Below are positions 20,449 through 61,248 of a DNA stretch of 64,000 bases, one piece after another. The first letter of the stretch is position 1, and each line of letters opens with the position of its first letter. The notes below the pieces were generated by a model. That model was not told where the DNA came from. It ran no database searches and saw only the letters and a program-made list of their open reading frames with translations. The stretch spans positions 124,001-188,000 of the IMG/VR virus record IMGVR_UViG_3300023278_002893; one strand, 5' to 3'. The position numbers and the translations under genes were made by a program.

Positions 20449-22875
20449 TTATGTTTCCGTAACCGTGGCGGTGACGGTCGAGACGCCAACAGTGGCACCG
20501 ACTGTGAATTGTGTGGTTGCGCGTCCTCCTGATATGGTAGTGTCTGTAGAAGGAGTAACCGCACCGTCTCCTGCAGTAACCTGGAAAGTGACATCCTTTC
20601 CATCCAAAGCCTCACCCCAAGCATTAATGACGTCCGCATTTACCAGCGTGCTCTGCGCAGTGCCAGCTGGAAGGGTAGTGTCGTCAGCATTCACTGCCAT
20701 GAACGCAGAGATTCTATCATCAAAATTAAATGCTCTAAGATTGGTACCGTTATCGACGTAATACAGAGTATCAAAATCATTCTGGTCGTAGAACGTAGTA
20801 TATGTGTTGGTCGAGTAATCAGAGATGTCTAGAAGAATCTCTTTATCGTCCGTCGTATTTAACAAAGTATCGTTATTTATAGTCTTGGTGTGGAGAATAT
20901 CTAAACCAGATTCATACTCAAGGTAAGTCAAGAAAGGAGCGCCCCCGATGCTGGAGGTCTTAGTCCACGCAAAACTACTAGTACCGTCCTGAGGTATCTG
21001 ATCTATTGTCGGAGAAATTACAGAGTTAGTACCAGATTCCGTAGAAAGAGCTACGTTATTAGCATACTTATAAAGAGTGCTATTGACCTTGATATAAACA
21101 AAACCTCCTCCTAATCCAGAGGCAGTGGTTGCTATCTGTACTCTCCCGTCCAGGAAGTCATTGTAGGTTTTACTCGGATCCCCAATAACATCAAATGACT
21201 CAATTAGGGGAACGCCCAGAACATCACCTTCACCATCTGTCTTCTCAACTGTCAATACAGCGATCTGAGGGAAAGTTTCAGTACCACTTACTACAAAATC
21301 ATCCGCCTCTAACGTAATGGGACCATCGGCGTAACCGAAGATCTCTATGTTACACGCGTCTGTTACCACTGTAGGAGGTGAGCCTGGGCCTACCACCCCC
21401 TGCAACCCACTCCATGTAGTAGATATTCTCTCAATACCGATATCACCTACGGCCGGGGGCTCCTTGTGCCCGCTAGCAGTTACCAAATCAAAAGTAAATT
21501 GCTCGCCTGAATTAGGAGTAGAGGTAGTAGCAATTAGAAACTCTATAGGAGTATTAGGATCAACACCCTCATCGTAAAGAACACCGGTCTGTGCGTCTGT
21601 CAGAGCGCCTGTTAAAGTTCCAGAAACTTGCCAAGCAGAACCGGAAAACGCAACAGTAAATGCATCAGTACCTATCTGAGTATTGTGCCACAGAGGACGT
21701 CCTTCTCTCAAATCACCAGAAGAACTGTTATCCGTCAGATTAGACATATAAGAAGCGAAGTACACGCCTGTGGTGGTGGGTGAAGTTTCTATACCTACCC
21801 CCTCACTCATGATTGTATTGTTATCCGAATCAAGAGCGCGGATAGCAAACCATCTTTTCTTATTTGTGAGCGAGACAGGATTGACATTAATCTCTGCTCT
21901 AAAATCTCCAGCCATTGTATAGGTAGTTTCTAACTGTCCGTTCCCAACAGATACATTATGTGATATTAATTCAGATCCCTGATCTCTTAGGAACTGAGGG
22001 TTTGCTGTACTCTCAACCCAACGTGCGGGGTTGAAATTATTAGATCCTGCGGCGGAGCCGGCCTCGGCATCAGAGAAATCATCACCCAAATTAGTTTCCG
22101 TAGATCCCACATTATCTTCGTTGAATCGGATAGTATAAAATCTATCATTGGGAGTATCAAAACATGCGTCTAGAATATTAGACTTTTCAAACTCAAATGC
22201 ACCAGCGGCTGCACCGTCGGTGTCAAAAAAGGAAAGAACGGACACAAACGGTTGAAGCTCATCCTCACTATTAGTAATAACCTTGTCCTTCAGTGCCACT
22301 TCAGAAACGAATGCGAATGCGGCAGAATCATCATGCAGGATTCTCCAGTAGGGCATTCCGTTTCCTGTCGCATTGATGGGGGGTGCGCTGAAATCGAGGA
22401 GGTATCGAAACTGATTACCTGCAGGAGTAGATATGACAGCCTCTCCGACTGTTGAGATAGTTGCTATGAAGTTGGTGGCGACGAATTCTGAATCTAGATT
22501 ATTCAAACTTGTAGACACATGCCATTTACCAGTAGTCGTGTCTATAGCTGCGGTGGAAAATATTATTATCTGGGTAGTGGATACCAATCGGCCGCCAAAA
22601 TATACAATCATCATATCCGCAGGGGAAATCGGACCGATAGTAGTATAAAGACCATCACGCCAACCCGGGACCTCTACTTGAGTATCAGGAGTCGAGGTCG
22701 CTGCGCCGAAAACGGCAGTAGCTTGAGGATTTTGGAGAACTAGCCTTACAAATTGAGTACCATTATGTAGAGATCGATCGACATCGTCTATACTAGACAC
22801 CACAGTATCACTGTAGTAACTCTCCATATTCTTAGTTGTATCGGTAGAACCTAGCCTACCTTGTTGAACAGTCAC
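20449..22875 (-). CDS. Virion protein (808 aa) with C-terminal Big-1 (invasin/intimin-type) Ig-like domain
   Basis: C-terminal TLPAGTAQSTLVNADVINAWGEALDGKDVTFQVTAGDG...GRATTQFTVG...TVTAT. Confidence 0.7.
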   Translation of the reverse strand: MTVQQGRLGSTDTTKNMESYYSDTVVSSIDDVDRSLHNGTQFVRLVLQNPQATAVFGAATSTPDTQVEVPGWRDGLYTTIGPISPADMMIVYFGGRLVSTTQIIIFSTAAIDTTTGKWHVSTSLNNLDSEFVATNFIATISTVGEAVISTPAGNQFRYLLDFSAPPINATGNGMPYWRILHDDSAAFAFVSEVALKDKVITNSEDELQPFVSVLSFFDTDGAAAGAFEFEKSNILDACFDTPNDRFYTIRFNEDNVGSTETNLGDDFSDAEAGSAAGSNNFNPARWVESTANPQFLRDQGSELISHNVSVGNGQLETTYTMAGDFRAEINVNPVSLTNKKRWFAIRALDSDNNTIMSEGVGIETSPTTTGVYFASYMSNLTDNSSSGDLREGRPLWHNTQIGTDAFTVAFSGSAWQVSGTLTGALTDAQTGVLYDEGVDPNTPIEFLIATTSTPNSGEQFTFDLVTASGHKEPPAVGDIGIERISTTWSGLQGVVGPGSPPTVVTDACNIEIFGYADGPITLEADDFVVSGTETFPQIAVLTVEKTDGEGDVLGVPLIESFDVIGDPSKTYNDFLDGRVQIATTASGLGGGFVYIKVNSTLYKYANNVALSTESGTNSVISPTIDQIPQDGTSSFAWTKTSSIGGAPFLTYLEYESGLDILHTKTINNDTLLNTTDDKEILLDISDYSTNTYTTFYDQNDFDTLYYVDNGTNLRAFNFDDRISAFMAVNADDTTLPAGTAQSTLVNADVINAWGEALDGKDVTFQVTAGDGAVTPSTDTTISGGRATTQFTVGATVGVSTVTATVTET

Positions 22876-25565: not shown

Positions 25566-26912
25566 CTAAATGCTAACCACCGCAGATATAGTAACCAGTC
25601 CCGCAGTATCACCTGCGGTATAAGTCACGGTCGCCTGACCGTTCGAGTCTAGGGAAATAGAACCAGTCTCTGAAAGACCAGAACCAGTACCACCCCCACT
25701 GGTCTGGAAAACAATAGTAGCTGCTGGTGTTTGTAGGTAAGGAAGTGCGTACTGATCGGTAACCGTAGCGGTAATGACCGAAGTAGAAATTTGATCCGCA
25801 GCCAAAATAGCAGGGGCCGAAGACAAAGCAATTGCGGTTGGGAAGGGCTTGAATGTGGCTAACTGGTAGTTGTAGGTAGATTCAGTAGATTCAGTACCAT
25901 CAATGTTAAACTTCTGTTGAAGTCTGAACAGAGTATCTTTTTCCAATGCGAAATCAAAAACGGTATATACTGTATTAGAATCCGGGCTTAGATTATTCTG
26001 AATAGCAGATAATTCCGTAATAAGTTGAGGGTCTAACGCATCTATGAAAAGGAGATTGTTGGTACGTATGAAAATAATATAACTACGCTTATTGAATTGA
26101 GACAACGACCCGTCAAATACTCCTCCCGAAGGATTACTAGGAGTAACACCCGCTTCGATAAGATCAACGAAAGTAGCAGCATCCACATCCTTATAAGCAC
26201 CCCCTGAGGTTCTGGACAGAACAGTACCCTGTTGGATACTAATCTTATACAACGCCCCTGCATCCTGAGACTTCAAGTAATGCTGATTAAATACCCAGAG
26301 ATTCTTACTAAATACTACCGTATCGCCCGCATTAAACCCTACGGTTTTGTCCGCAGAGAGCGTAACGACCTTAGTGGCAGGATTAGTTGAGGAAACAGTA
26401 ACTCTAAGAGACTGCCCTGTGAAATCAGTAGGAGATGTCTTAGTACTAGGCCCAATGAACATAGTGGTTCCTGCGGTCAGTAATCCAAATATATTGGAAT
26501 CTACAGAGTTATCGAAACTAACCGTTATAGTATCAGTATTCTCAGCACCGCCTGCAAGCACTGTACCTGTGTACATCTCCAGTGAAAATGCATTAGCTTC
26601 GAAATCATCAGTGGCATTGGACGCAAAACTATATGATTGCTGCAATACCATAACAAAGTTGGAAATAACCCACCTCTTGATGATAAAACCATCAGACGCC
26701 GTAGCAGACAGATGCTCCATAGTCCACCAGCTTTCCCCATCGTATGTCATATCAATCACTTCTCGGGAAATAGATGTGTCCAGAGGATAAGCGAAAGCCA
26801 ACGTACCATCATCCGTCTTCTGGATCATGGTATCCGTGGCCTGATCGAAGCTGTAAAAATAACCATCTACGCGAGTGACGTTGCCGTTAAGTAGGCGAAC
26901 ATTCTGAATCAT
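25566..26912 (-). CDS. Virion protein (448 aa), paralog of 24217..25551, C-terminal Big-1-like domain
   Basis: YDGESWWTME, MFIGPS, LWVFNQH, FRLQQK, ITATVTDQY, GQATVTYTAG. Confidence 0.75.
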   Translation of the reverse strand: MIQNVRLLNGNVTRVDGYFYSFDQATDTMIQKTDDGTLAFAYPLDTSISREVIDMTYDGESWWTMEHLSATASDGFIIKRWVISNFVMVLQQSYSFASNATDDFEANAFSLEMYTGTVLAGGAENTDTITVSFDNSVDSNIFGLLTAGTTMFIGPSTKTSPTDFTGQSLRVTVSSTNPATKVVTLSADKTVGFNAGDTVVFSKNLWVFNQHYLKSQDAGALYKISIQQGTVLSRTSGGAYKDVDAATFVDLIEAGVTPSNPSGGVFDGSLSQFNKRSYIIFIRTNNLLFIDALDPQLITELSAIQNNLSPDSNTVYTVFDFALEKDTLFRLQQKFNIDGTESTESTYNYQLATFKPFPTAIALSSAPAILAADQISTSVITATVTDQYALPYLQTPAATIVFQTSGGGTGSGLSETGSISLDSNGQATVTYTAGDTAGLVTISAVVSI

Positions 26913-36364: not shown

Positions 36365-39300
36365 CTAGTTTCCTCTGCCTGCCTGTGCGAGGGAGAGAGC
36401 CTGTGATGCCTGGGTAAGTGCAGTAGATGCTCTCTGACCGATCTCGCCCAGAAGCTGTTTATCTGACTTACGTGCGGTTTCTGCTGTTGTAATCTCTGTG
36501 TTAATCTGTCGGACTTCGGCCTCAATACCTTGCTTATTGTCCCCGACGGCAGTCGAGAGGTCGGTGATCTGCTCGGCAAGGACAGAGACATTTTCAGTTG
36601 CCGCGGTGGCTACGGTTGTAGCGGTAGCTGCGGCAGATGTCGCGGATGATGATGCCTCCGTGGCAAGAGTGGCGCTCTCGCTGGCAGCCTGGGAGGTCGT
36701 AGTTGCGAGTTCTATTGTCGTACTGAACGTAGAAACCTCGAGCGTGAGAGCGTCTAGATTACTAGTCGTAAGGGTTTGTTTTGATTCCAGTGTGGATACG
36801 TCCTCCTCCAAAGCTAGAATTGATTCATTGAGTGGTCCAGAAGTATCGGTCAGCCCCTCGACCGCATCCACCCTAACACCCAAAGCGGTAATGTCAGCCC
36901 CCGCAGCTCCTGTCGCAGCCTCAGTGGCAGCTACAGCCAGTTCATCGATGTTAGAAACTGTAACTGCAGGCTCGCCATCAATGGTGACTGTGAGGGTCTC
37001 ACCCAAAGCTTCGGTAATATCAGAACCTATGGATGCGATATCGGAACTGAAGGATTCAGGAAGGGTCACGCCCTGGCTTGCCAACCCACCTATAACCTCA
37101 TTGAGCGACGCTATGGAGTCATTCAGAGCACTTAGTGCCTCCGAGGAACCCCCATCGCCCGTACCACCCCTAGTAACTCTGTCTGCTGGATCATCTCTAG
37201 TACCCGGCGCAGAGCCATCTTCCTTTCTAATAACATTGGAGGGACTAGCAGCGTCATCACCAAACCTGGCGCTAGCATTCGCCTCAGCAGCCAGGTTATT
37301 ATTCGTAAGTCCTACCATGGGATTTATTCGGCGCATGCCTGCATTTAGATTTACGGTGCCGGTTCCTGCAAGCTCTGTGCTGGAGAGAACACCACTTTCC
37401 CTGCCTCGATAAACATGCTCGCCGCTATCGATACCCTTTTGAATAATCCTCATGGCACTTATCTGCTTTTCACCGGCAGTTAGTTCGGATCCGCGATCTG
37501 CTGCCTTTAACTGACCTGTGTAAGTACTTTCGCCAGGCCTGCCACCAGCGAGCTGTGCAAATGTTCCAGCGGTTGGGGGTTTTGTGCCGAAACCGCCCTG
37601 CATAGATAATCCTAAAGTCGGTCCAGTAGATTTGGTACCAGGACCTGCTACCATAGCCGCCAACTCTTGCTCATTCCACTTGTTTTTGATAGTCTCAGGA
37701 CCTGAGGTTGCAACTCCTCCGGGCGCGGGAATCGCGGACGCGCCCATTCTTATACCGGAGGTGGGATCCGCAGCCTTGTTAGTTAGCGTCTCAAGTGCGG
37801 ATAATTGTTCTCTTTGTAATCCCACAGAGGTGGTTAGGATTGCATTCGTAGGGATCATCCCAGTAGCCATATCCTCTACTCCCGCCTGGCGCGCTGCCTT
37901 CTTTGACAGGTCTTGCGCTTCTTGAGTAATGGAACCTGCAAACTTGGAGAGACCTTCCAGAGAAGGAAGTCCCTTGAAGAAAAGTTTATCATCGCGACCC
38001 TTCTTCGTCGCCTGTTCGGAGGTTGCCAATTCCTCACCAAGGATATCAAAATACTTCTGAGCTTTAGCCTTCAAGTCATCACTCTGTCCCGGATCAAACA
38101 TTACATCTGCAAGGGTTGATCGGACACGCTCCGCTTTCTGTTGCTGACTTCGTAGAGCCGTAGTTTCTATGCTCTGCTTCTGCTGAATGACAGCTTCCTT
38201 CTCATCAAAGTCAACGTCTTTCAGTGCTTGCTTCTTGGCGCGCATATCGGCCAACGTCGTTCGTCCACCACTACCAAATTGTTTCTCTATATCTCGTCTC
38301 TTGTTTTCGAAAGAAGTTCGGAAACCAGCTTGACCCACTCGGGCCATTGGACCATCCAAATCAGAATCTATCTTATTAATGATTTGAGAATCTGCTTTTT
38401 CGAAATCCCTAACCATGTCATTTAGAGTGGTAGCGAAGTTTATAGCAGCGTCCGCCAATCTAATAGCGGGAATATCTGCCTGCAACTTATTATTGCTGTC
38501 CTCTAGGGCCTTGATAGCCTTAGCTTGAGCTTCAAGATGGGATGCCCGTACTGAGTTCTCCCACTGAATGGACTTGGCCTTCGCCGCGTCAAGATCCTTG
38601 GAAGCCTTTAGCTGCTTCGCTGCTTTGGCCTTCGACATATCTTGGGGGCTGGATGATTTAATCATCTCCGTGGTAAGACCGGAGGCGGCCTTGCCATCAT
38701 TCTCGAAGACCTCCGCCATTCTGTCCGCTAGATTTGACTGTAAATCCTTCTGACTCCAGAACTGCTGGGTAGGTTGACCATCGGCGGTGTCGGACAGAGG
38801 TACGTCTATCATTCCTCTACCCTCAAACTGCTGCATACCATTCATAAGTGCTACTATATTCTTCATCTGGGGATGGGAAGGAGCGTTAGCACCCGCTCTT
38901 AAATTACCATCGGCATCTGGAATTATGTTAAGAACCTTCTTGAAGACATCGTTCATCGCGCCGCCCCCAAGTACTTCTCCAAACGCGCTGGTCTTCTCTT
39001 TAAAGGACTTCTTGGACATAACGGAGGCAAAGGCTTCGGCCCTATCACCTTCCGGCAAGGACTGGATGTAGGTAAGTTCGTGCAGGGCTTCGAGCATGGA
39101 GTTTTGGACACTCAGCTGGCGACCCCCAATATCGGTAAAGTCGTCAGCTAATTTATTCATACCCCTAATCATCTCAAGTTGGCCTGCTGAGGTTTTCTCT
39201 CCAGAGCCAGCTAGACGCTTCTTTTGCTCGGAGGTCATGGAGTCCCCGGCTTTGGCCATGTCCGTAACTGAAGTTTCGAAGTCAGACATCTGCTTCTCTA

Positions 39301-42300
39301 TCTTATTGAGTGTGTCCAGATCTCGATTTCTTTTATCTGAGGTTCCTGCAGTCCCTCGAAGAAGTTTAGCAAACTCAGGCACTGCGACAGCTAGCTTCTC
39401 CAAACCACTGAGTTCTTTAAAGGACTTGCCGAGATCTATGCTGGGGACAGCGCCCATACCCTTCATCGCGCCGCCAGAGCCTGTTATAAATTTGTTCTTG
39501 TTAGCTTCGGCCCGTTCGTAGTCGGCAGCGGCCGTAGCTGCGTCTTTTAAGGTAATGTTAAGCTTCTCTTGCATCTTCTGGTAATTACCCAGAACAGAGA
39601 GGAAGAAACCCTCCTTCTGTAGTGTCGTTGCAAGCTGCAGAACTTCCTGAGTAACTACCTTTAGTGCCTTCCCGGAAGATGCTTGTCTCTTGTAAGTACC
39701 CTCAACATCCGTAAGTAGGTCTTCTCCGTACTCCTTGGTGAGGGCATTGAATTCGGACTGAATGTCTGCCAACCTCTGCATGTCCTCTGGAAGAGAACGC
39801 ATTACTCTCTGCTCCACAGACAGTTCTTTCTCACTGGCGGGTCCCAAGTTAGGCATCCCTCCCGTAGGAATACGAACTCCCGCCATAGCACCCGAGTACT
39901 GCATGGTCATAATCTTCTTAGTGTGTGCCTCAGCGGCATCCACTTCCTTCTTGGTCCAGGTCATGAAGTGGTGTGCGACATCTGCCTTTTCCAACTCCTT
40001 GACGACACCCTCCAATTCGGTGCCCATAACACTGGAGAGAGCCCCGGTGCTGGTTCTAAATTGCCAAATAGCCTTCTCGGTGCCTTCTTCAAGCGAGGAG
40101 AAAAGTGTCGTGACTCCTCCCGTTTTCAGGTCTGCAGCTGCTTGGGAAATAACGGCCATCTGACCCGCCTTAACTGGTGCTCCAGCACTGCCCGTTACCG
40201 CGCCTGAGCCGCTTGTAGCACCTATTCCTCTAGACAGGAATGCATTTGCTATAAGTCCAGAAGACTGAGTGTTCTGATAATCCAGAACCCCACCCAGGCC
40301 GGACTGCTTACCCATGAACTGGGTCATTACTGAACTACCAGTTGCCCCTCGACCGAAGGCACCCGCTTCCGCGGCATCGTTAATTTGACTTTGGAGTTGT
40401 GGGGTAATACTCCCCATAGCACTTTCCAAATCACCGAACTCAGGAATAGATTCAAAAACCCGTTTCATCTCATTGGCGGTGGCCAGAACTGCCTCGCGCT
40501 CAGCGCCTTCCTGCGCCACCAATTCATTCATTCTGGACTGGTTAACAAGGCTGTACTCACCAGACTTAGCCTGTTCGTTCATTATCTTCGAAAGTTTTTG
40601 AATTTCCTTTCTTGTGTCACGAAGCTTACCCATACCGCTTTGATCTTCGTTCGCGCCAGCCATGCCTCCAGTTGCGAAATTTGCAAACTTAGCGAAGCCC
40701 TGCTTCATGTTATCCAGTATTCCCTCCGCAGTGGTTAGCTCCTCTGCGAATTTAGATATAACATCTACCTTGAAGGCAGTGGTTATAGCGTTCTGGGCAT
40801 CTAATGCTGATACAGTAAGGGATTTGAAATTAGAATCTATTCCCAGAATGTAGTCGCCAGAATCTGAAATACCCTGGACCTTGGTAGGGTCTAGTGAAGC
40901 CATGCTATTACCTATGTCAGCCATCATGTTGTTGTACGTCTGGGCCGCGGTGGCGGCTCCCTTGAAGCGACCTTCACCTAATGCTGTACTCATAGCGGCA
41001 TCGTCCGCCATGGCTTCCTGAGCTTTCCCTACCTTAATAAAGGACAAAGCTAAACGATCAGCATTAACAGATTGGCTTCTTAGAGTCGACGCGGCGTCCT
41101 CGCTCCTCCCCATAACCTCCTCTACGGACTGCTCGTAATCTTTGGCTGATTGGGAGGCTTTCTGGTATGCCATATATGCACCGCCAAGAGCGGCGACAAC
41201 GGTCAGGATCGCGGCGGCGCCGACTGAGGTAACCATTGCGGCGCTGAAACCTTTCTGAGCGACGGTAGCGCCTAAGAATCCCTTTTCAGCCAACTTTGTT
41301 ACAAGCGACGTTCCGAGAAGACTATTCCCCAAACCATCAACTGCTCTTCTGGTGAGATGGGCAGTACTAGCGAATTTAGTCATCTCCTCAGTGCGGCCAG
41401 TCCCAGCACCTGCGGCGTCCCAGCCAGTCTTAGCGCTTGATTTGATTCCCGAGAGCAACTTAAAGGTACTGCTTCTACCCCCGCCAGTAGTACTCACCTC
41501 GTTACCTGAGAAAACATCCATAGTATCTGCGATCAGGTCAGCAGCCTTGTGGAAAGCCAATCCCATCGCAACAGCACCCATGGTGCTCTTCATAATCATG
41601 GGGTGTAGATCACCGACGAGTCCAACTAGTTTGGAGACACTCTGAATTGCACCAGTTGCCAATCCGAGACCGGTCTTACCAAACTCTAGTACAAGACCCT
41701 TAACACTTTCCTTGAGAACCGTAACATTCTTGGTGAATGTTTGCATCGCCAATCGGTTCTTTCTCATAGCAAAGCCCTGCGAGTTAGCAGCGTCAGCGCT
41801 AGCAAGCAAGGCTTCGTCGAAGTTATTCATCAAGACGATGAATGAGTTATAGTGTCTAATACCCGCCATTGCTTGAGCTAGATTGACTTGCTGTGCGCGA
41901 GTCATTCCGTCCCAAGAACCGGCTAATTCCTTGAGTATGCCCATAGCGGGTTTGAAATCACCGCCCACCTCCATACTACCAACGCCCATCTTGCCAAGTT
42001 CCTTCTGCGCAGTAGGCCGTCTCATCGCGCGGAACATGAACTTGGTGCTGGTTGCAACTTCCTTACCAGATTGTCGAGTTACAGCACCAATTGCAGTAAC
42101 CACTCCCATGAAGTCTTCAAAACCCACACCCGCCACTTGGGCGGCAGCACCGGAACGCTTAACCGCGTCTGCTAGATCCTTAGCTGTAATAGCGTGCCTG
42201 GCTGCAACAGCTGCCCAGGCATCAACAAACTCAGCCGACCCTGACACAGAGTCCCCGAAAACTTTATGAGCTGCTGTGAGAGCTTCCGTAGCTTCTACGG

Positions 42301-45300
42301 AAGTCAGAGTGGTAACATTAACAGCGAGCATGGTAGCGCGTGTGCGCTCCATGATCTTATTCATCTTCAAACCCTGCTGACCATAGACAACCATACCGTC
42401 TAATACATCTTCAATGCCAATTCCAAACTCGGATGCAAAATCAGATGCGGAATCCTGCATACGTTCGAAGTTGGTAACCGAGGTGTCCATCACCTTCTTC
42501 AACGCAGTGACCTTAGTCTCAACTTCGGTAATAACAGTGACCATTTGTCGAAAAGCTCTGATAGTACCATAAACGATACCGGTAGCAAATCCCCACTGAA
42601 CCACTCTTCTCAGAGAGTTTCTCATATGTCCAGTAAATTCTTTAGCGGCACTACCTGCGTTAGTAAGAGACACTACGTACTCATCACCGAACCTACGAGC
42701 AGACATTGTCAGTTTTTCAAGAACCGTGTTGCTCTCCTGATCTACAATCGGAAAGGACCCCTCTTTGGAAATTCTATTACCACCAATAGGCTTGAATCCC
42801 TGCTTGTGCATGGCGGTTAGCTGCTTTCCCCACTGCTCAGCTTGCGCTTCAATGTCTCTTCTCTGCTTATCATAAGACGCCTTCAGATCCATCCCGCCTG
42901 TTGCAGCAGCTTGAATGGGGCGGGAATCAGCAGCAGCGCGTGCGTGCTCTTCCGTAGTTCTGGGAACGGTACCTAACTTCTCATATGCTTTGTGTGCCTT
43001 ATTTGCCATGTCGGCCATTGCTTTGAGAATGTTTACTTGTTCGGAGTCGGGGCCACTGATTGTACCCATGAGAGATGACATTGCTTTTAGAATCGAGGAA
43101 ACCTTACCTAAGTTCTCTACAAGTGTCTCGGGGGACTGAGCAAGTTCATCCCAAATCTGAGTCCAAACCTTGGTCTTACTAATGCCAGCCTCAATCTGAT
43201 CCTTGGCGCTCATCAAGGTTTCACCCAGGCCTCCAAATTTTTCTTTGCTCTCACCACGACCCGCACTCTGCTTGATGATATCAGACCATGCAGATTTTCC
43301 AGGCTGAATTCGTAATTCGTCCGCGGCGGTGGGGAGCATTGCGCCAGAACGGCCCATAGCAATACCTGTCTGTTTGAATGTACCAGGTAGTTTAGTCTGC
43401 CCTAAAACCGCATACATTTGCTGAATAGTGTTGTTGAAGTGCTCTAGTAGCTCGGCGAATTCGGGGGTATCTGCCGCTCCTGAATCCCGAACCTGCTTTA
43501 TCATCTCTTGAAGACCCTTACCTTTGTTGATATACATCTGAAGCTCGGCAGCTTGGAATTCCTGCATCGCCGAGAGATACGCCTCGTTTCCCCGACGACC
43601 ACCACCACCTGCATCTTCGCCGACATCCTTCAATCCTTTCTTATATCCGAAAGCGGTTTCCTGGTAAATCTTCTTCATGTCTGCCATTCGGGCAGGATCT
43701 ACCCCACCCTCCTGTCCCATCTCACTGAGCATCAATCGCATAGACTCGGCGGGGACTTCCATTCCCGAAATGTTCTCGCCGGGGAATGAGATAGGACCCG
43801 CAGTGCGGGTACGTCCACCTTTTCGCTCACCGGCGACCAGCTTGAGATTATTACGTGCCTCCTTCAATGCCTGGTCAAATAATATCAACTCATCACTGAG
43901 CTTCCTATTGAGTTCTGCTCCGGGGTATCCTCCGGCAGAACGTATTTTATCCTGCGCCTCACCCCGGACCGTCTGTCCGTGGGTTTTAGTCACAGATGCT
44001 ATCATACCGCCAGCCTGTTTAAGAATATTTCCAGAAATACCACCAACCGCCTCATCTAATTCAGAAAACATCTTCATTAGAGCTTTTTGTACTTCGTCGG
44101 GGATGTCTCCGAAGATCTCCATCCACTTGGATGGGTTAGTAAGATGGGCTAGCAGCTCTTCAGCGACCATCTCGAAGTATTTCGTACCCTGTGCCTGTAT
44201 GGCTTCATCCGCAGTTTTACCTGCAAACTCTTTCAAATTACCTATACCAGAAACCTCAGCACCGCCACCACTCTCCCTTCGGATCTTACTCAACAGCTTT
44301 AATTTATCAGCGTTACGCCCTACCATTGTTAGTTGATTTGCCGCCTTTAGTATTAACGGCGCCGCCTGGCCTATAGCGGTACCACCATCGACGAGGGAGG
44401 CAGATATCTCATTGATACCAGATCTAACAGTCTTAGCACTCTTATGTATATTCTCATGAGCCAGTGTAGCACCCATATTGGATATAGCTTGGGTAACGAA
44501 CTCTATACCTTTAGCAGTGGTCGGAATTTCCCCAGCGTCTATACGCCCAAGCATCTTCAGAGCCATTTCCAGAGGCTTCATTCGGGAGGTTGCGCCGACG
44601 CTGATCTTTCCCTCGCCGGGGGCAGTTCCTGGTTTCTCACGATAAACACCCGCAACCTTCTTAGGATCTAAACCACTAGCAATAAAAAGCTCGTCGCTAA
44701 CTACACCGTACATTTGCTTGATATTAGCAATCCATGCAGAAAGTTTATCTACTATCTCTTTACCCACAGCAATAGGTTTACCCGGATCTTCTTCCAGATC
44801 CACCCCACCCTTCAGCGCCTGGGCGGTGTCGCTAAACAGCGTGTTGAGAATCTTAGAAGCGCGATCCTCCAGAGGCAGCCCCTCCATCTCTCGGGTGCCC
44901 TTCCTTCTAGACAATGCATAGGATTCAGGAATAATCTCACGAGGATCTAATCCCTCTATCTTGCCTTGATTCTGGGCAGTTTTGGTAGTTCTTTGTCTGA
45001 CGTACTCTGCAGCCGATGACGGGCTAGCGCCTTTATCTATCATGGCCTGGCGGGCATTCTCCTCCAGCATTTCCTGCATGCGTTTGAGCTGACCTCTAAG
45101 ATCCATCTTATCCAACAACTGCTGAATGACCTTCTCGTAATTACCCTTGTCTAATCCTTGACCCTCTTTGAGAACTCCCTCCTCAAGAGCCGTCTGTGTA
45201 AGTGCGGCTGGATCCTGAGACCTAAGCATGGGCTCCATCTCGGCAAACATTTGCTTATTATAACGTCCCATTTTACCAAAAGTATCACCACCCCCAGCAT

Positions 45301-48300
45301 CCATTCCTGCTATGATCCTAGCCATTCCGGAGGGTCCGGATGACAATGACTTTACAAGATCTTGTGGTCCCGCCATGTTGCCCGAACCGCTCTTAGCAGC
45401 TAAAGACTCATTAATGTTCATCATAATGTAATCGGAAGCTGTTGCAAATGCGTCTCCCGACATCTTAGCACCACCTACAACTGCGTTATAGAAAATGTTG
45501 AACACGTCCGAAAGAAGTCCTACAGAAAGCTTACCGCCGGTAAGTGCCAAGGTCTGCTCTCTTTCCGTTTCTGCGCTATCAGGCATGGCCACTGCGGCTT
45601 TATATGCATCCGGGCGCTTGGCGATTGCGCCGAATGCCTCGTTAGCGCCTTCCAAGCTAGAATAATCTTGATCTGCAGTTTCTATACTACCTATAATATT
45701 ACGCATAGCGGACTGCATGGAGAAACCGGTCTGTAAATAAATCTCCTTAGCTGTCTTCATGGCGTGTGCTGACTCTATCGTCATTGCCCCAAACAGCTTA
45801 GTGGCGTCACCGTCGAAGTCTAGGTTCATGGTTGCCGAATGAAAAGCATTAGTAAATTCATAAATAGCGCGGTTGGCTATTCCAAGATTCTTCCTAGCTT
45901 TGTCTGCGGCAGGACCCAGTCCGTTATTGGCTTTTATAACCTTCATAGAAGATGCCCGTAGGTCCTCAAAAGGTTTTTTTACCTTCTGAGCATCTTCGGT
46001 AGAGGACATTGCGAAGGTACCCGGAACACCCATCTTACCTTCAGGTAGTCGCCCCGTCTTATCCTCCATTATTTTAACAATCTGCTGGCTCGCGCCTCCT
46101 GTAACAGGATCGCGAAGATGCATACCTCTTTCCATAACCTTGTCAAGATCCTTCCCGCTTAGCTTCTGTCCCATAGCCTTAGCTTGTTTCTTAGCCAGAG
46201 ACCGCATCGTTGCGTAGTCTTTCTTGCTGAGAAGAATACCGTCTCGGGGGAGGACGTCCTTAGTCACCTGGAGAGACTTCATTCTATCCAGAGCCTCAAG
46301 CGCATCACTCGTATCCGCACCTGCCTTTCCTAAAGCCTTAAGATGTCTTTCCGCTCTCTTTATCTCGGAAGACATATCTACTGCATACTCAATAGCTTTA
46401 GAGTACTGCGCGTTGGCGAGACCCGAGCCACGAGTCTGTGCTACCTTTCGAGACTCTTCAAATGCAGGAGTTCCTGAGGTTCTACCGAATCCCTGAGAGG
46501 TGACCTCTTGTAGGAGCTGTCCTTTTACCTGATCCTGTCTTTCCCATTGTTTTTCCGTAAAAGCAGGGTCTTCGGCAGAAGCTGTGCCTACACGCTTAAG
46601 TGCGGCTTCTACAAGATCTAAACTCTTAAACAAACCACCTGTGCTTGCTATTGATCCGGTTTTTTTATTCTCCGCCCTGAAACCAAGCACGTCGCGCATT
46701 CTATTAATCTGTGCAACATCTCCCTTACCCCCACCCACATAATCTTCAGCGGACTGTCGATTAGTTTCTATCCTACCACCACGTCCAAAGTATTGTATAC
46801 CAGATTTCATCCCAAGACCTTTCATAGCCTTAACGAGAGGCATAAAAGTGTTCTTGAACTCCTTAACCATAGACTTGCCTTCGTCTGTATCCGGTCCCGC
46901 TTTCTTAATATCAGATATCTGCTGGTTCATTCTCTTAGTGAGGAATTCTGCAGATTCCCTATGCGCAGCCTCACTGTCTCTGGGAGTCAATTCTCCCCGG
47001 CCGCCTTTAATGTTCATGCTCTGCTGTCTAAGTTTTTCCAAAAGCCTGGTCAGTTTACTGGGATCCGCCAAACCTTCTTCGGTAGTACGCACATCCCGCT
47101 GGCCTACAGCCTTTCCCATTCCGGGGATAAAGAGCTCCTCTTGCCCTCCCCCTTTTTTAGGAAGCATCATACTAAAAGCCTGCTTCTGAAACTCAGGATC
47201 TGCTAGAGTACCTTTCATCATATCAGGTTCGGCGAATCCTCCCGGCATTGGTGAAAAATCTTCAGGTTTCATCTTCTTCAGGTTAGAAACGACGCTGGCA
47301 CCAGCGCCGCTCATACTAAGAAGCATCTTGCGATAATCATCCTGCGCGGAGATTACATGTTTACTACTTTTGTTCTGGGCTGCCATTGCAAAGGATAGGG
47401 TTTCCGCTCTCTGCTCAAGAGCTTTCATTGCCACGGGGTCTATGAATCTATCACGCTCGATTGACTCTCCGGTCTGACCTTCCTTCTCGATTCGATTCCA
47501 CGCTAACCTACCTGTAAGTACCTTACCGATTCCACCCGCAGCCAGAGCACCTGAAGTTTTCTCGAATGCTGATTCGGGGTCAAGTCCTAACTCCTTACCC
47601 ACCGCGCGGGCGGCGGGTGCCATCTCCAACCCGGGAGTTGCTTTCATAGCACCGGTTATCTTATCAAATATTGTTTGCGCAGCTACCTTACCTCCAGAAG
47701 CCATGCTGGTAGAAATCATTGCGATGATGTCTTGTAGGTCAGCACGTCTAATGAAACCTTCTGCGCTGGTAATTACGTCAGTGTCTTTACCTGCGCCGAA
47801 CTTTGCCATAGACTCGTCAGATACAACCTTAGCAATACTTTTACTTCCTGCAAAAGTTGAGAACTTAGAACCGGTAGTCGCTGCATTGAATTCATCGAAG
47901 ACGATCTCGAACATCTTCCTACCATTTCTAAAGACCTGCTTTAATTCCTTGATCTCCGCATAAGACCCCTTAAGGTTAAACTCAATGTCTTTACCCGCAG
48001 CATCTATGCCTAATTTCTGACCCTTCTGTAATCCCATTCCTACGACTAGGTCTTCCGAAAGATTTGAAACCGTTTCTTTATCTTCCTTGTACATACCCGC
48101 ACGTTTAGCTGCGGAAGCTCTCATCAAGATCTGATCTTCGTGAAGCTCCGGTATGTGTTTTTGAGACACTGCTGCAGTTTTAAAATTCAATGACGACGCA
48201 GAAATCTGACCCTGCTTCAATAGCTGCTTCATTAGAGGGGACACAATGTCAGGCATCTCACCGCCTTCCACCTTAGCAAATCCCTTCATAAAGTTAGTAC

Positions 48301-50029
48301 GCATCTGCTTACTAAACCCAGCACCACCTGCCAAGAGTTCGGCTACGGGCCTGGTCTGGACTTTACCTTGGACAGCCCCTCCCTCCGACAGACCACCAAG
48401 AGACTTAGCCATGTCAGCTGCGGCCTCCTCGGTGAGTCCAATCATGGAAACCACGTCGGCACCTGCGGCAACAAACTTACCGGAAGCGCGTGTCATGTCG
48501 TGGAGAATAGCAGCTATCTCACCGAGCTTACCAGCATCGGTGTCATGTTTCATTATCTTCTCGGTCTGTTTCTTGGAGGGGGTCCATTGAAGTTGGGACT
48601 CTCCCCCCTTTATAAACTGACCCATAGATTGATGTTTCTCATATCTAGACGCATCCCCGCCAATTCTCTTTCTAATCATCGAACGCGTCATCTGAACAGC
48701 AGTTTCTTGGGACCTGCCTGCTCTTCTGGCAATTACTTTAAGTTCACCCTCAACACCCTCCAGGGCGTGAGTAATACTATCAAGCCTTGTTACGTTGTTT
48801 CCCTGAATCTTAAGAACACTACCTATTATCTTCTCTGAACCCGCACCTGTCTTAATGGTAGGGACGGAACCAGGAGCCACGCGTACATCCCCAGGAGAGG
48901 GCAACCCCAGAGCAGCCTGAAGATTTTTACCTTTGAAACTAGGTAAAGCTGTTTCTATATCCTTACCTAAACGAACAAGAGCTTTGGATACCGTCTTAGC
49001 AGTCTGTTCTGCCTGTGCTTGGTAGTCAACTCGACCCTGCGTCCCACGGGGAGGTGAAGTTCTAGCCTCCTCCCTCTTAACGGTAGCCTGCTTAGTTCCC
49101 CTGCTGTCTATTTTAGGAACACCAGTAACAGACCGGGTCTGGGGAGTAACCAAACTACTATCTCTCCGGCCTCCCGTTTCACTACGAGTAGTTCTATCTC
49201 TTTGGATATTTCTGTTGGTGGCGCCCGCAGCGGGTTGGTTTTTGATAGTCTGTCTGGGGTCTCTCTGCGCTTTTCCAGCTCCAGAACCAACAATGCCGCC
49301 AGTCAGCGCGGCTCCCTGCTTATTTATCTTAGAGATAAATCGGGATCGCGCTGCGGCGGCAGTTCTTTCAGCGGCGGTCGAAGCTTCAATCGCCTTTATA
49401 TTATCTAAAGTAGCTTTTCTTTTGCGCTCCTCCAGTCTTACATTCTGCTCCAGGATACGACTAACTTTAGCCTGGGCACGTTGTAATTTCCTGGAAGTCT
49501 CAGTAGATTTATCACCTGCTTTTATTTCACGCGCAAGAGACTGGGCCCTCTTCTCAGCGGCTACGGCTGCTTTCTCGATACGCGCAACCCGTCCTGCTAA
49601 ACCTGATTCTATTTTACCTAGAGTCTTGTCACTCTTAGAAGAGGACGCCTGTGCGGCAGTTCCAGCGCGCGATGGTGTAGATTTTACAGGTGTGGAAACT
49701 TGTGTCTTAGACTGGCGCTGCGACTTATTAAGTGCAGCAGTTAGAGAAGATAAAGCAGATGTCATTTCTTTGGTAGACGCTTCAAAGCTCTTGAATTCAG
49801 ACCTAAGTACTTTACGTACATCCTTGGCAAAGTCTGCGCCCTTGACGCCTGTAGCCCCAGCTGCAGCTTTAACTGATCCAGAACTAGGACCGATAGCTCC
49901 AAGATTAACACCTTTAAGTGCGTTCTGGGTAGCGGACTTAACGGCTTTCTTTATTTGACCTTCTAGACCTTTGATACTAGTCTGATCAAGTTCTAGATCT
50001 ATACCAATCTTAAACTTTTCTTCTACCAA
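36365..50029 (-). CDS. Tape measure protein (4554 aa) fused to an N-terminal two-barrel RNA polymerase domain and a zincin-like metallopeptidase motif
   Basis: TTG start with GGAGG SD; follows the tail chaperones; TP901-type core from ~aa 2470 (RRVVQWG...ASEFG...AITAKDLADAVKRSGAAA...GKEVATSTK); RNAP motifs HEDQILM, GSKFSTFAGSKS, LRDP, NLDFDGD; HENIH...EELLAH. Confidence 0.88.
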   Translation of the reverse strand: MVEEKFKIGIDLELDQTSIKGLEGQIKKAVKSATQNALKGVNLGAIGPSSGSVKAAAGATGVKGADFAKDVRKVLRSEFKSFEASTKEMTSALSSLTAALNKSQRQSKTQVSTPVKSTPSRAGTAAQASSSKSDKTLGKIESGLAGRVARIEKAAVAAEKRAQSLAREIKAGDKSTETSRKLQRAQAKVSRILEQNVRLEERKRKATLDNIKAIEASTAAERTAAAARSRFISKINKQGAALTGGIVGSGAGKAQRDPRQTIKNQPAAGATNRNIQRDRTTRSETGGRRDSSLVTPQTRSVTGVPKIDSRGTKQATVKREEARTSPPRGTQGRVDYQAQAEQTAKTVSKALVRLGKDIETALPSFKGKNLQAALGLPSPGDVRVAPGSVPTIKTGAGSEKIIGSVLKIQGNNVTRLDSITHALEGVEGELKVIARRAGRSQETAVQMTRSMIRKRIGGDASRYEKHQSMGQFIKGGESQLQWTPSKKQTEKIMKHDTDAGKLGEIAAILHDMTRASGKFVAAGADVVSMIGLTEEAAADMAKSLGGLSEGGAVQGKVQTRPVAELLAGGAGFSKQMRTNFMKGFAKVEGGEMPDIVSPLMKQLLKQGQISASSLNFKTAAVSQKHIPELHEDQILMRASAAKRAGMYKEDKETVSNLSEDLVVGMGLQKGQKLGIDAAGKDIEFNLKGSYAEIKELKQVFRNGRKMFEIVFDEFNAATTGSKFSTFAGSKSIAKVVSDESMAKFGAGKDTDVITSAEGFIRRADLQDIIAMISTSMASGGKVAAQTIFDKITGAMKATPGLEMAPAARAVGKELGLDPESAFEKTSGALAAGGIGKVLTGRLAWNRIEKEGQTGESIERDRFIDPVAMKALEQRAETLSFAMAAQNKSSKHVISAQDDYRKMLLSMSGAGASVVSNLKKMKPEDFSPMPGGFAEPDMMKGTLADPEFQKQAFSMMLPKKGGGQEELFIPGMGKAVGQRDVRTTEEGLADPSKLTRLLEKLRQQSMNIKGGRGELTPRDSEAAHRESAEFLTKRMNQQISDIKKAGPDTDEGKSMVKEFKNTFMPLVKAMKGLGMKSGIQYFGRGGRIETNRQSAEDYVGGGKGDVAQINRMRDVLGFRAENKKTGSIASTGGLFKSLDLVEAALKRVGTASAEDPAFTEKQWERQDQVKGQLLQEVTSQGFGRTSGTPAFEESRKVAQTRGSGLANAQYSKAIEYAVDMSSEIKRAERHLKALGKAGADTSDALEALDRMKSLQVTKDVLPRDGILLSKKDYATMRSLAKKQAKAMGQKLSGKDLDKVMERGMHLRDPVTGGASQQIVKIMEDKTGRLPEGKMGVPGTFAMSSTEDAQKVKKPFEDLRASSMKVIKANNGLGPAADKARKNLGIANRAIYEFTNAFHSATMNLDFDGDATKLFGAMTIESAHAMKTAKEIYLQTGFSMQSAMRNIIGSIETADQDYSSLEGANEAFGAIAKRPDAYKAAVAMPDSAETEREQTLALTGGKLSVGLLSDVFNIFYNAVVGGAKMSGDAFATASDYIMMNINESLAAKSGSGNMAGPQDLVKSLSSGPSGMARIIAGMDAGGGDTFGKMGRYNKQMFAEMEPMLRSQDPAALTQTALEEGVLKEGQGLDKGNYEKVIQQLLDKMDLRGQLKRMQEMLEENARQAMIDKGASPSSAAEYVRQRTTKTAQNQGKIEGLDPREIIPESYALSRRKGTREMEGLPLEDRASKILNTLFSDTAQALKGGVDLEEDPGKPIAVGKEIVDKLSAWIANIKQMYGVVSDELFIASGLDPKKVAGVYREKPGTAPGEGKISVGATSRMKPLEMALKMLGRIDAGEIPTTAKGIEFVTQAISNMGATLAHENIHKSAKTVRSGINEISASLVDGGTAIGQAAPLILKAANQLTMVGRNADKLKLLSKIRRESGGGAEVSGIGNLKEFAGKTADEAIQAQGTKYFEMVAEELLAHLTNPSKWMEIFGDIPDEVQKALMKMFSELDEAVGGISGNILKQAGGMIASVTKTHGQTVRGEAQDKIRSAGGYPGAELNRKLSDELILFDQALKEARNNLKLVAGERKGGRTRTAGPISFPGENISGMEVPAESMRLMLSEMGQEGGVDPARMADMKKIYQETAFGYKKGLKDVGEDAGGGGRRGNEAYLSAMQEFQAAELQMYINKGKGLQEMIKQVRDSGAADTPEFAELLEHFNNTIQQMYAVLGQTKLPGTFKQTGIAMGRSGAMLPTAADELRIQPGKSAWSDIIKQSAGRGESKEKFGGLGETLMSAKDQIEAGISKTKVWTQIWDELAQSPETLVENLGKVSSILKAMSSLMGTISGPDSEQVNILKAMADMANKAHKAYEKLGTVPRTTEEHARAAADSRPIQAAATGGMDLKASYDKQRRDIEAQAEQWGKQLTAMHKQGFKPIGGNRISKEGSFPIVDQESNTVLEKLTMSARRFGDEYVVSLTNAGSAAKEFTGHMRNSLRRVVQWGFATGIVYGTIRAFRQMVTVITEVETKVTALKKVMDTSVTNFERMQDSASDFASEFGIGIEDVLDGMVVYGQQGLKMNKIMERTRATMLAVNVTTLTSVEATEALTAAHKVFGDSVSGSAEFVDAWAAVAARHAITAKDLADAVKRSGAAAQVAGVGFEDFMGVVTAIGAVTRQSGKEVATSTKFMFRAMRRPTAQKELGKMGVGSMEVGGDFKPAMGILKELAGSWDGMTRAQQVNLAQAMAGIRHYNSFIVLMNNFDEALLASADAANSQGFAMRKNRLAMQTFTKNVTVLKESVKGLVLEFGKTGLGLATGAIQSVSKLVGLVGDLHPMIMKSTMGAVAMGLAFHKAADLIADTMDVFSGNEVSTTGGGRSSTFKLLSGIKSSAKTGWDAAGAGTGRTEEMTKFASTAHLTRRAVDGLGNSLLGTSLVTKLAEKGFLGATVAQKGFSAAMVTSVGAAAILTVVAALGGAYMAYQKASQSAKDYEQSVEEVMGRSEDAASTLRSQSVNADRLALSFIKVGKAQEAMADDAAMSTALGEGRFKGAATAAQTYNNMMADIGNSMASLDPTKVQGISDSGDYILGIDSNFKSLTVSALDAQNAITTAFKVDVISKFAEELTTAEGILDNMKQGFAKFANFATGGMAGANEDQSGMGKLRDTRKEIQKLSKIMNEQAKSGEYSLVNQSRMNELVAQEGAEREAVLATANEMKRVFESIPEFGDLESAMGSITPQLQSQINDAAEAGAFGRGATGSSVMTQFMGKQSGLGGVLDYQNTQSSGLIANAFLSRGIGATSGSGAVTGSAGAPVKAGQMAVISQAAADLKTGGVTTLFSSLEEGTEKAIWQFRTSTGALSSVMGTELEGVVKELEKADVAHHFMTWTKKEVDAAEAHTKKIMTMQYSGAMAGVRIPTGGMPNLGPASEKELSVEQRVMRSLPEDMQRLADIQSEFNALTKEYGEDLLTDVEGTYKRQASSGKALKVVTQEVLQLATTLQKEGFFLSVLGNYQKMQEKLNITLKDAATAAADYERAEANKNKFITGSGGAMKGMGAVPSIDLGKSFKELSGLEKLAVAVPEFAKLLRGTAGTSDKRNRDLDTLNKIEKQMSDFETSVTDMAKAGDSMTSEQKKRLAGSGEKTSAGQLEMIRGMNKLADDFTDIGGRQLSVQNSMLEALHELTYIQSLPEGDRAEAFASVMSKKSFKEKTSAFGEVLGGGAMNDVFKKVLNIIPDADGNLRAGANAPSHPQMKNIVALMNGMQQFEGRGMIDVPLSDTADGQPTQQFWSQKDLQSNLADRMAEVFENDGKAASGLTTEMIKSSSPQDMSKAKAAKQLKASKDLDAAKAKSIQWENSVRASHLEAQAKAIKALEDSNNKLQADIPAIRLADAAINFATTLNDMVRDFEKADSQIINKIDSDLDGPMARVGQAGFRTSFENKRRDIEKQFGSGGRTTLADMRAKKQALKDVDFDEKEAVIQQKQSIETTALRSQQQKAERVRSTLADVMFDPGQSDDLKAKAQKYFDILGEELATSEQATKKGRDDKLFFKGLPSLEGLSKFAGSITQEAQDLSKKAARQAGVEDMATGMIPTNAILTTSVGLQREQLSALETLTNKAADPTSGIRMGASAIPAPGGVATSGPETIKNKWNEQELAAMVAGPGTKSTGPTLGLSMQGGFGTKPPTAGTFAQLAGGRPGESTYTGQLKAADRGSELTAGEKQISAMRIIQKGIDSGEHVYRGRESGVLSSTELAGTGTVNLNAGMRRINPMVGLTNNNLAAEANASARFGDDAASPSNVIRKEDGSAPGTRDDPADRVTRGGTGDGGSSEALSALNDSIASLNEVIGGLASQGVTLPESFSSDIASIGSDITEALGETLTVTIDGEPAVTVSNIDELAVAATEAATGAAGADITALGVRVDAVEGLTDTSGPLNESILALEEDVSTLESKQTLTTSNLDALTLEVSTFSTTIELATTTSQAASESATLATEASSSATSAAATATTVATAATENVSVLAEQITDLSTAVGDNKQGIEAEVRQINTEITTAETARKSDKQLLGEIGQRASTALTQASQALSLAQAGRGN

Positions 50030-60180: not shown

Positions 60181-61248
60181 TTAACTTCGGTCAATAACAC
60201 CAAGCTGGGTCATTCGAGAGTCGAGAAGGGCGAACCCTACCTCTTCCCATCCGAAGAATCCCTGCTTCTGCTGTCGAAGCAAGCTCGGGTCATCGTGCGC
60301 CTCGAACTCCTTTCGTACAGGCATAACAAGCGAATCATTAACGGAGAGATCAAATCCATAGACCTGGGTCTCACCTGCAGTGGTAACGTTTCCGTTAGCA
60401 TCCACGGTGTTAATGTTCGTTGGGGTGTAATCATTGAAGTCGCCGGAACCATCTACCTGGAAGATACCATAAGAAGCGCCGTTCTGGTTGATGTTGAATC
60501 GACCAGTAGCACCAAGCTGGAATACCTCATGTAGATTTACGTTCCAGATTCGACCCATACCAGCAGCCGTGAAAATCTCTCGGCGGGTGATCGGATCAAC
60601 CTGAGTATCGGTCCACTCACGAATGTCAGCGGCGTCCTCAGGGGAAATGTATAGGTCAGTAAGGGAGCGTCGAACTCTCTTCATTCCTACCATCATCAGG
60701 TTCAGGAGCTCCTTCGAGAGGAACTTCTCACCGGTAGATCCGGAGGGAACCTGGAAAACAGGAGCATTGCGAGCGCCAAGGAGACCCTGGCCTGCGAAGT
60801 CAGTAGTAGCACCGGGGACAATTACTCGCCATCCGGACTCCTCTTCGTAGTCTGCAATAGATCGTGCTGCGTTTCGAGCTGCTCGCTCGGGGATATCAAT
60901 GCGTGAGTCGCGTGCGTAGGTTACCTTCCAATCCGCAGATACTGCGATGGAGAAAGTAGGTACGTACACTTCCTCACCAACACCCTCAACGAAGTTCTGT
61001 GCGATATATCCGAGTCCCGGAAGTACGAATACCGGAACGTCGAAGTCGTCAGCAACTGGATATACAGCCTGTGCGCCTGGCGCCAATCGCTCAACAGCAA
61101 AGAGCTGTCGCATGATGGACGCGTCTCGAATCTCCTGGAGAATCGGGACAGTAAGAGCCTGCGCAAAGGCTTTGTATGCTTCAACACCCTCGGGAGTGTC
61201 GATAGCTGCAGTTGCTTGGAACATTTCCTGTAGCTTTGTTCTATCCAT
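60181..61248 (-). CDS. Major capsid protein (HK97-fold expected, 355 aa)
   Basis: Follows scaffold and decoration genes; AFAQALTVPILQEIRDASIMRQLFAVE, LYISPEDAADIREW, GFFGWEEVGFALLD; downstream terminator. Confidence 0.85.
   Translation of the reverse strand: MDRTKLQEMFQATAAIDTPEGVEAYKAFAQALTVPILQEIRDASIMRQLFAVERLAPGAQAVYPVADDFDVPVFVLPGLGYIAQNFVEGVGEEVYVPTFSIAVSADWKVTYARDSRIDIPERAARNAARSIADYEEESGWRVIVPGATTDFAGQGLLGARNAPVFQVPSGSTGEKFLSKELLNLMMVGMKRVRRSLTDLYISPEDAADIREWTDTQVDPITRREIFTAAGMGRIWNVNLHEVFQLGATGRFNINQNGASYGIFQVDGSGDFNDYTPTNINTVDANGNVTTAGETQVYGFDLSVNDSLVMPVRKEFEAHDDPSLLRQQKQGFFGWEEVGFALLDSRMTQLGVIDRS

Follow-up and report, generated by a model that had tools for sequence, protein, structure and literature searches.

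What does an HExxH motif do in the middle of a phage protein that begins as an RNA polymerase and continues as a tape measure? The question is raised by a giant gene in the stretch of DNA analysed here (the window), 64,000 nucleotides corresponding to bases 124001-188000 of the 297,725-bp virus record IMGVR_UViG_3300023278_002893 of IMG/VR, a record rated complete by CheckV. According to the list of open reading frames (ORFs) and its translation, the gene (window 36365..50029, minus strand, as are all its parts given below) encodes a virion tape-measure protein of 4,554 amino acids (aa) from a TTG start; judged by its sequence, this protein is a tape measure that carries an RNA polymerase at its N-terminus and an HExxH domain in its centre. 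As its invariant residues suggest, the HExxH domain is probably an active zinc metallopeptidase that accompanies the polymerase, and the giant protein itself would be its most likely substrate; to this reading as a whole we assign a probability of about 40%.

The open frame of the giant ORF is uninterrupted across the 4,554 aa, and its start is shared with the closest relative, P0002 (MVEENFKIG). The tape-measure core (window 41111..42718; aa 2438-2973) includes a hydrophobic segment at aa ~2927-2955 and is, in the conservation profile, the most conserved part of the giant protein. Pfam PhageMin_Tail matches aa 2525-2723 with 88.9 bits (cut-off 33.2) and PHROG 4211 matches the core with an E-value (E) of 3e-79; with such family matches the identity of the core as a tape measure is certain. 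The core is followed by a C-terminal extension (window 36368..41110; aa 2974-4554), recognized from the translation and the conservation profile, which has a Ser/Thr/Ala-rich tail and in which a Pfam scan yielded no match and detected no lytic domain. The giant gene lies within a structural gene block, with the major head protein (PHROG 2522) upstream at window 60181-61248, and relatives of the giant protein are labelled in public sources solely as 'TP901 family phage tail tape measure protein'.

By profile comparison, the N-terminal ~1,750 residues make up a single-chain two-barrel RNA polymerase, a paralogue of a 1,054-aa polymerase that the phage encodes separately. This second single-chain two-barrel enzyme lies outside the window (G000:C1:26734-29898, plus strand, locus L039), contains ...HGNKG... 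and SMNLDFDGD, scores above the cut-offs of the Pfam families Rpb2_6 and Rpb1_2, and has matches among bacterial beta subunits of the PDB. When a family alignment of 29 sequences (aa 602-1751 of the giant protein) was compared with it by hhalign, the two matched with a probability of 97.6% (E 3e-12, 312 columns), and aa 615-959 were placed onto residues 267-608 of the 1,054-aa polymerase. These residues of the giant protein correspond to the beta-subunit-like half (window 47153..48187), within which TGSKFSTFAGSKS (aa 719-731) aligns with the ...HGNKG... of the second polymerase. DFDGD, the catalytic metal-binding motif of the beta-prime-like barrel, is found at aa 1404-1408 (window 45806..45820) in the context NLDFDGD, and this segment aligned collinearly with the 1,054-aa polymerase (E 3.8e-4). 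All family members that reach the region have NLD[FYH]DGD, with one DYDGD and one DHDGD variant. A Pfam scan did not recognise the polymerase region, and phmmer and profile searches of PDB sequences with it returned only coiled-coil noise. The two variants are those of L028 (NLDYDGD) and L026 (NLDHDGD; contig SDBV01000079.1, 104 kb); both loci keep the HExxH and the Glu, and a His as second residue of the polymerase metal motif, as in L026, is unusual.

Between polymerase and tape-measure core lies the HExxH domain (window 44030..44779; aa ~1751-2000), whose extent was taken from a structure model and alignments and whose size is ~250-315 aa. Its motif is HENIH (window 44444..44458; aa 1858-1862), with H1858 and H1862 as putative zinc ligands and E1859 as putative catalytic base; the Glu of this motif serves zincins as catalytic base and does not bind the metal. 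Upstream of it, GVYR (window 44639..44650; aa 1794-1797) forms the second predicted strand (residues 55-58 of the model by DSSP), and downstream E1958 (window 44156..44158), in the motif E-L-L-A, is the putative third zinc ligand. A preliminary description, made from the DNA alone, had picked out KVAGVY, HENIH (44458-44444) and EELLAH, and all three are present (aa 1791-1796, 1858-1862 and 1957-1962), HENIH at the window position that it gave; the strand that it saw in KVAGVY is the second predicted one. It had also set the motif between RNA polymerase and tape measure, which is borne out by the DFDGD at aa 1404-1408 and the polymerase homology found with hhalign on one side and by PhageMin_Tail at aa 2525-2723 on the other.

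With a His content of 0.75%, the giant protein would be expected to contain 0.0175 HExxH motifs by chance, and it contains exactly one. An exhaustive HMMER search, run with aa 1740-2060 against 1.84 billion representative proteins, recovered ten relatives besides the query, and a word-based search added one more, 63% identical overall; these relatives are mostly 4,000-5,400 aa long, and all 12 proteins (query included) have a single HExxH, at the matching place. Viral and metagenome contigs were scanned with seeds from the polymerase region (NLDFDGD and one other pattern), to avoid circularity, and gave 27 loci. Every frame in them that extends at least ~500 aa beyond DFDGD has one HExxH, 437-509 aa past DFDGD, and the loci without it are those truncated by contig ends. 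From HExxH to the tape-measure core the spacing is 609-711 aa across members, and the N- and C-terminal lengths are variable.

When 28 distinct sequences of the domain, with 19-53% identity to that of the window, were aligned, only G1833, H1858, E1859, H1862 and E1958 proved invariant (28/28); G1794 and A1961 (26/28 each), G1807 and L1827 are near-invariant. Apart from these positions, few stretches of the giant protein are as poorly conserved as the HExxH domain in the conservation profile. Because the four residues of HExxH and E1958 are invariant in an otherwise poorly conserved domain, the alignment is strong evidence that they form a functional site. The preliminary description had singled out conservation of HExxH plus a later Glu across homologues as a test of its zincin, and in this respect the proposal holds, with both HExxH and E1958 kept in all 28. 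Its choice of E1957 as the third ligand does not hold, since four of the 28 sequences have N, T, Q or K in its place. As E1958 is invariant while E1957 varies, E1958 is likely the third ligand, and as E1859 is also invariant and is the catalytic base in zincins, catalysis is favoured over mere metal binding.

Among 50,697 GenBank phages neither a search for near-identical DNA nor tblastn gave a match. The polymerase and HExxH regions of IMGVR_UViG_3300023278_003531 (L002 / L012; 196,567 bp) are 100% identical to those of the window, and this record is probably a shorter assembled fragment of the same phage. Among 185,579 species genomes the sole match was WJJK01000045.1 (L007 / L041; 49.6 kb), which is binned in a metagenome-assembled genome of Candidatus Altiarchaeales; the contig is phage-like, having a block of structural genes and, nearby, a gene with weak Hint/intein signals; either its binning is wrong or it gives a clue to the host. 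One relative, P0004 (L006:513-12038), has an insertion of ~65 aa in the variable loop that joins the HExxH helix to the Glu helix. This insertion contains a helix-hairpin-helix (HHH) DNA-binding motif (Pfam HHH_5, E 3e-9), and it hints that the HExxH domain may work close to nucleic acid. Apparent natural gene splits were considered as markers of domain borders and rejected, as P0004 starts after a scaffold gap of N's and P0008 is cut by a contig end.

The fold of the domain was addressed with a confident AlphaFold2 (AF2) model of aa 1740-2060 built from 12 sequences (mean predicted local distance difference test score, pLDDT, 81.6; predicted template modelling score 0.77). Its elements follow one another as a long N-terminal helix, three short strands, a helix, the HExxH helix, a variable helical insert and the helix with E1958. 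The predicted strands (aa 1774-1777, 1794-1797 and 1808-1812) precede the active-site helix, HExxH is in the predicted helix 1839-1864 with pLDDT above 90, and E1958 is in the predicted helix 1940-1962, so that a putative Glu ligand on a later helix is present at the level of sequence and secondary structure. For ejected polyvalent proteins, Iyer et al. (2017, PMC5512222) gave the core of the zincin-like peptidases as a helix at the N-terminus, a sheet of three strands, one helix with HExxH and another with the Glu; the AF2 topology fits this core save for one extra helix. Shape matches of the model in the ESM Atlas included M48, M78 ImmA/IrrE, DA1-like, Zincin_1 and DUF1570 proteins with template modelling (TM) scores by query of 0.23-0.30; the highest TM by hit, 0.53, came from an M78 match in which 126 residues aligned to a 148-aa protein. 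In the AFDB clusters the top match was an IrrE N-terminal-like protein (E 0.059), and three M48 clusters were within the top 18. Searches of AFDB Swiss-Prot and BFVD with the model gave nothing significant; HtpX had rank 29 in the former, and the highest-probability rows of the latter were large polyvalent proteins.

At the sequence level, Tox-MPTase2 was the only Pfam family to recur, in 5 of 27 members, at E of at least 0.051, below threshold and around the motif only (11.7-13.7 bits in the four members listed, cut-off 25). PF01435 had no match anywhere in the genome, and phmmer and profile searches of PDB sequences with the HExxH domain gave coiled-coil noise only. The M48 (HtpX, BepA, LoiP, Ste24) and M78 (ImmA/IrrE) peptidases, which share with the domain the HExxH and a Glu ligand on a later helix, are its best, though weak, shape matches. 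They differ from it in several respects: the hidden Markov models of these families do not match, the Asp of E-x-x-A-D is absent from the giant protein, and an extra helix precedes the HExxH helix here. The E-x-x-A-D of Escherichia coli M48 peptidases lies 59-83 aa past HExxH, whereas the E-x-x-A of the giant protein lies 100 aa past it. Taken together, the model points weakly to a zincin fold, and the domain is likely a divergent gluzincin-like one that cannot be assigned to any named family.

The closest known parallel to the architecture is gp96 of the Thermus phage P23-45, a virion RNA polymerase fused to a tape measure (Chaban et al. 2024, PMC10770324). Both proteins are giant tape measures (5,002 aa in gp96, 4,554 aa here) with an N-terminal two-barrel polymerase that contains DFDGD. 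Each of the two phages has, besides, a two-barrel polymerase encoded by a gene of its own, a paralogue of the fused one: the non-virion polymerase gp64 in P23-45 (PMC10770324), and that at C1:26734-29898 here. The genomes differ in size (84 kb in P23-45, 298 kb for the present record), and so does the peptidase: that of gp96 is an M23 metallopeptidase, described as characteristic of many tape measures (PMC10770324) and located by Pfam far downstream at ~aa 3161-3251, whereas the putative peptidase here, the HExxH domain, is between polymerase and tape-measure core. HExxH is absent throughout the gp96 sequence. Between the giant-protein family and gp96, BLASTP recovered the motif only, and hhalign over the full length gave at most 0.4%, with a single-sequence template.

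A polymerase-linked HExxH domain is known from two other kinds of phages. The virion polymerase of N4 has an HExxH peptidase-like C1 subdomain at aa ~2130-2448 (or ~2124-2375), the structure of which has been solved (PMC5512222; PMC13434306). As here, a virion polymerase that is ejected carries an HExxH domain on its C-terminal side, in the same chain, and the core topology described for C1 matches the topology predicted here; the N4 polymerase, however, is T7-like and not two-barrel, and N4 lacks the tape measure. In crAss-like phages the gene of a zincin-like protein is directly downstream of the virion polymerase gene and is fused to it in some phages, and for this zincin-like gp65 a role in polymerase activation or in peptidoglycan digestion has been suggested (Drobysheva et al.). 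In phi14:2 we located DFDID at residue 1361 of a 2,180-aa protein and HEIMH at residue 245 of the next protein, 'gp65' (GenBank Phi14:2_gp076). As here, then, a two-barrel virion polymerase is followed immediately by the HExxH domain, the virion contains both, and in some phages they form one polyprotein; the zincin of phi14:2, however, is a separate gene and has no tape measure, whereas here everything is in one chain. As a control, hhalign matched N4 C1 (L040, aa ~2118-2377) to gp076 of phi14:2 (L011, aa ~115-434) with 85% probability (E 6e-6, 156 columns), and by this comparison the polymerase-linked zincins of N4 and crAss-like phages appear to be mutually related despite their unrelated polymerase types.

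It follows from these studies that the fusion of polymerase and tape measure and the two-polymerase scheme are already established, in another lineage that has no HExxH domain, and that the association of polymerase and zincin is already established in N4 and crAss-like phages. A literature search found no description of polymerase, HExxH domain and tape measure in one chain, and neither tape-measure nor HExxH entries are listed for jumbo phages in the supplementary tables of the P23-45 paper. What is new, as far as sequence comparison goes, is a second lineage in which a virion polymerase is fused to the tape measure; it is unrelated in sequence to the first, belongs to uncultured phages of ~300 kb, and has an HExxH domain in addition. 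The preliminary description was right to name zincin-like domains in crAss-like phages and in polyvalent proteins, on both of which the literature agrees with it (Drobysheva et al.; PMC5512222). Its remark that it knew of no characterised arrangement of this kind stands, in the literature searched, for the three-part form but not for the fusion of polymerase and tape measure, which has been characterised (PMC10770324).

For the metal binding, catalysis, substrate and timing of the HExxH domain we infer the following. The fused polymerase would presumably be ejected into the cell to start transcription, as in P23-45 gp96. Directly after it, at a fixed distance, the HExxH domain would form a gluzincin-type site with H1858, H1862 and E1958 as ligands and E1859 as catalytic base, and would cut the giant protein, in cis or between copies. 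Cleavage may release the polymerase from the membrane-embedded tape measure, or activate it, once the protein has been ejected, or may trim the protein during tail assembly. We favour the giant protein itself as substrate because the domain is fixed between both modules in every member, because a free-standing or shuffled copy of it was not found among the relatives, and because parallel proposals exist for N4 and crAss-like phages. A more daring version, which we regard as doubtful, is that the domain could be a metal-gated release switch that severs the polymerase from the tape measure in the cytoplasm: it would be inactive while stretched in the tail tube, and in the cytoplasm would fold, bind zinc and cut the chain, so that the polymerase would first be tethered at the DNA entry pore and set free afterwards. 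If true, this mechanism would in principle also apply to the HExxH domains that accompany the virion polymerases of N4 and crAss-like phages.

Several results weigh against a metallopeptidase that processes the giant protein, and they concern both the fold and the role. In the AF2 model an extra helix (aa 1813-1831) separates the HExxH helix from the third strand, and the HExxH is at the very end of its helix, neither of which is the textbook layout. Foldseek against the PDB and VIA-align gave no significant match of the domain model to a solved zincin, the best matches being generic helical bundles, and the zincin matches in the predicted-structure libraries are all weak (E at least 0.06, TM by query at most 0.3). 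No peptidase family of Pfam or PHROG reached its threshold for the HExxH domain. Language-model features of the segment were nearest to tape-measure clusters, at a score below the reliable range that makes them a lead only. In hhalign comparisons the domain matched N4 C1 with 2% (template alignment shallow, 9 sequences), the phi14:2 zincin with 0.25% (template shallow, 4 sequences) and a trio of E. coli M48 peptidases with 0.5%, in each case at the level of the motif only. The zincin layout claimed in the preliminary description is supported by the AF2 model in its motif helix, the strand that precedes it and the later Glu helix, and is not backed by a solved zincin or a family hidden Markov model. 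As to the processing role, which the preliminary description had also proposed, the polymerase of gp96 is present in P23-45 virions as part of the full-size, uncleaved protein (PMC10770324), no homologue was found in which polymerase, HExxH domain and tape measure are in separate genes, and no cleavage site could be identified in the giant protein.

The conservation and fold evidence would serve just as well for an active metallopeptidase that acts as an effector and cuts host proteins (e.g. defence or transcription factors) after ejection. This role is among those listed for zincin-like domains of ejected polyvalent proteins (Iyer et al. 2017, PMC5512222), the weak similarity to Tox-MPTase2 is to a toxin-type peptidase family, and P23-45 shows that a fused polymerase can be packaged without cleavage. 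Effector domains, however, are highly mobile (PMC5512222), whereas the domain here keeps a fixed spacing to both neighbouring modules and has no free-standing or shuffled version, and we have no host or target to propose; we therefore consider an effector role rather unlikely.

The metal site might also lack peptidase activity and be structural or regulatory at the junction of polymerase and tape measure, or belong to another hydrolase or to an oxygenase. HExxH is known in non-protease enzymes, as pointed out in the N4 structure paper (PMC13434306). The lack of a significant solved-zincin match, a fold that is mostly a helical bundle and the language-model resemblance to tape-measure proteins would be consistent with such a site, and the HHH motif inserted in the variable loop of one relative hints at a nucleic-acid context. 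On the other hand, a pure metal site does not need E1859, which is invariant. The pattern is that of a full gluzincin, with E-x-x-A on a later helix as in M48 and a three-stranded sheet before the motif, and the weak matches from three independent libraries are zincins. A site without peptidase activity is accordingly an unlikely explanation in our view.

Quite improbable is a cell-wall peptidase that would aid the tape measure across the peptidoglycan, like the lytic domains of many tape measures. The domain has no similarity to M23 or other wall-hydrolase families, and to our knowledge HExxH gluzincins are not usual phage wall peptidases. It is also on the polymerase side of the tape-measure core and the hydrophobic segment, not distal like the M23 domain of P23-45 gp96, although that M23 domain, of a kind characteristic of many tape measures, speaks for a wall peptidase. 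Peptidoglycan digestion was mentioned as a possible role of gp65 in the crAss study (Drobysheva et al.), and Pfam detected no other lytic domain in the giant protein. Finally, HExxH is short and the protein very long, but a chance motif without function is excluded by the conservation data, as all 28 sequences, despite an identity of ~20%, share a motif with the low expected count given above, always in the same position and together with an invariant Glu.

Elsewhere in the genome, two small ORFs outside the window also have an HExxH in a zincin-like context, one of 215 aa (G000:C1:7341-7988, plus strand; LDHEVAHG) and one of 123 aa (235983-236354, minus strand; LSHELAHL); they are possibly SprT-like or other small metallopeptidases by their sequences. 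Downstream of the giant gene, in the same strand block, are two further giant ORFs, which likely encode tail fibre or baseplate proteins. The first (window 1-6459, minus strand) exceeds 2,153 aa, runs off the window and has a weak F5/8 type C match near its C-terminus; the second (window 6845-13471, minus strand; 2,208 aa) had no match in the family scan. Two proteins of the tail region (window 20449-22875 and 25566-26912, both minus strand) have C-terminal Ig-like domains, with a sub-threshold match to Big_1 and a match to Invasin_D3 of 33.2 bits (cut-off 33). Most of the remaining structural genes have no family match at all.

In three unrelated kinds of polymerase-injecting phages, the N4-like phages, the crAss-like phages and the tape-measure-fused lineage described here, an HExxH domain is attached to the polymerase or next to it. 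Of these, the giant-protein family is a very clean case, because its arrangement is fixed and because four putative catalytic residues and one glycine are invariant across ~28 divergent sequences. The fusion of polymerase and tape measure is not peculiar to a single Thermus phage: without detectable sequence similarity, it is found again in uncultured phages of ~300 kb that have been annotated publicly only as having a 'tape measure protein'.

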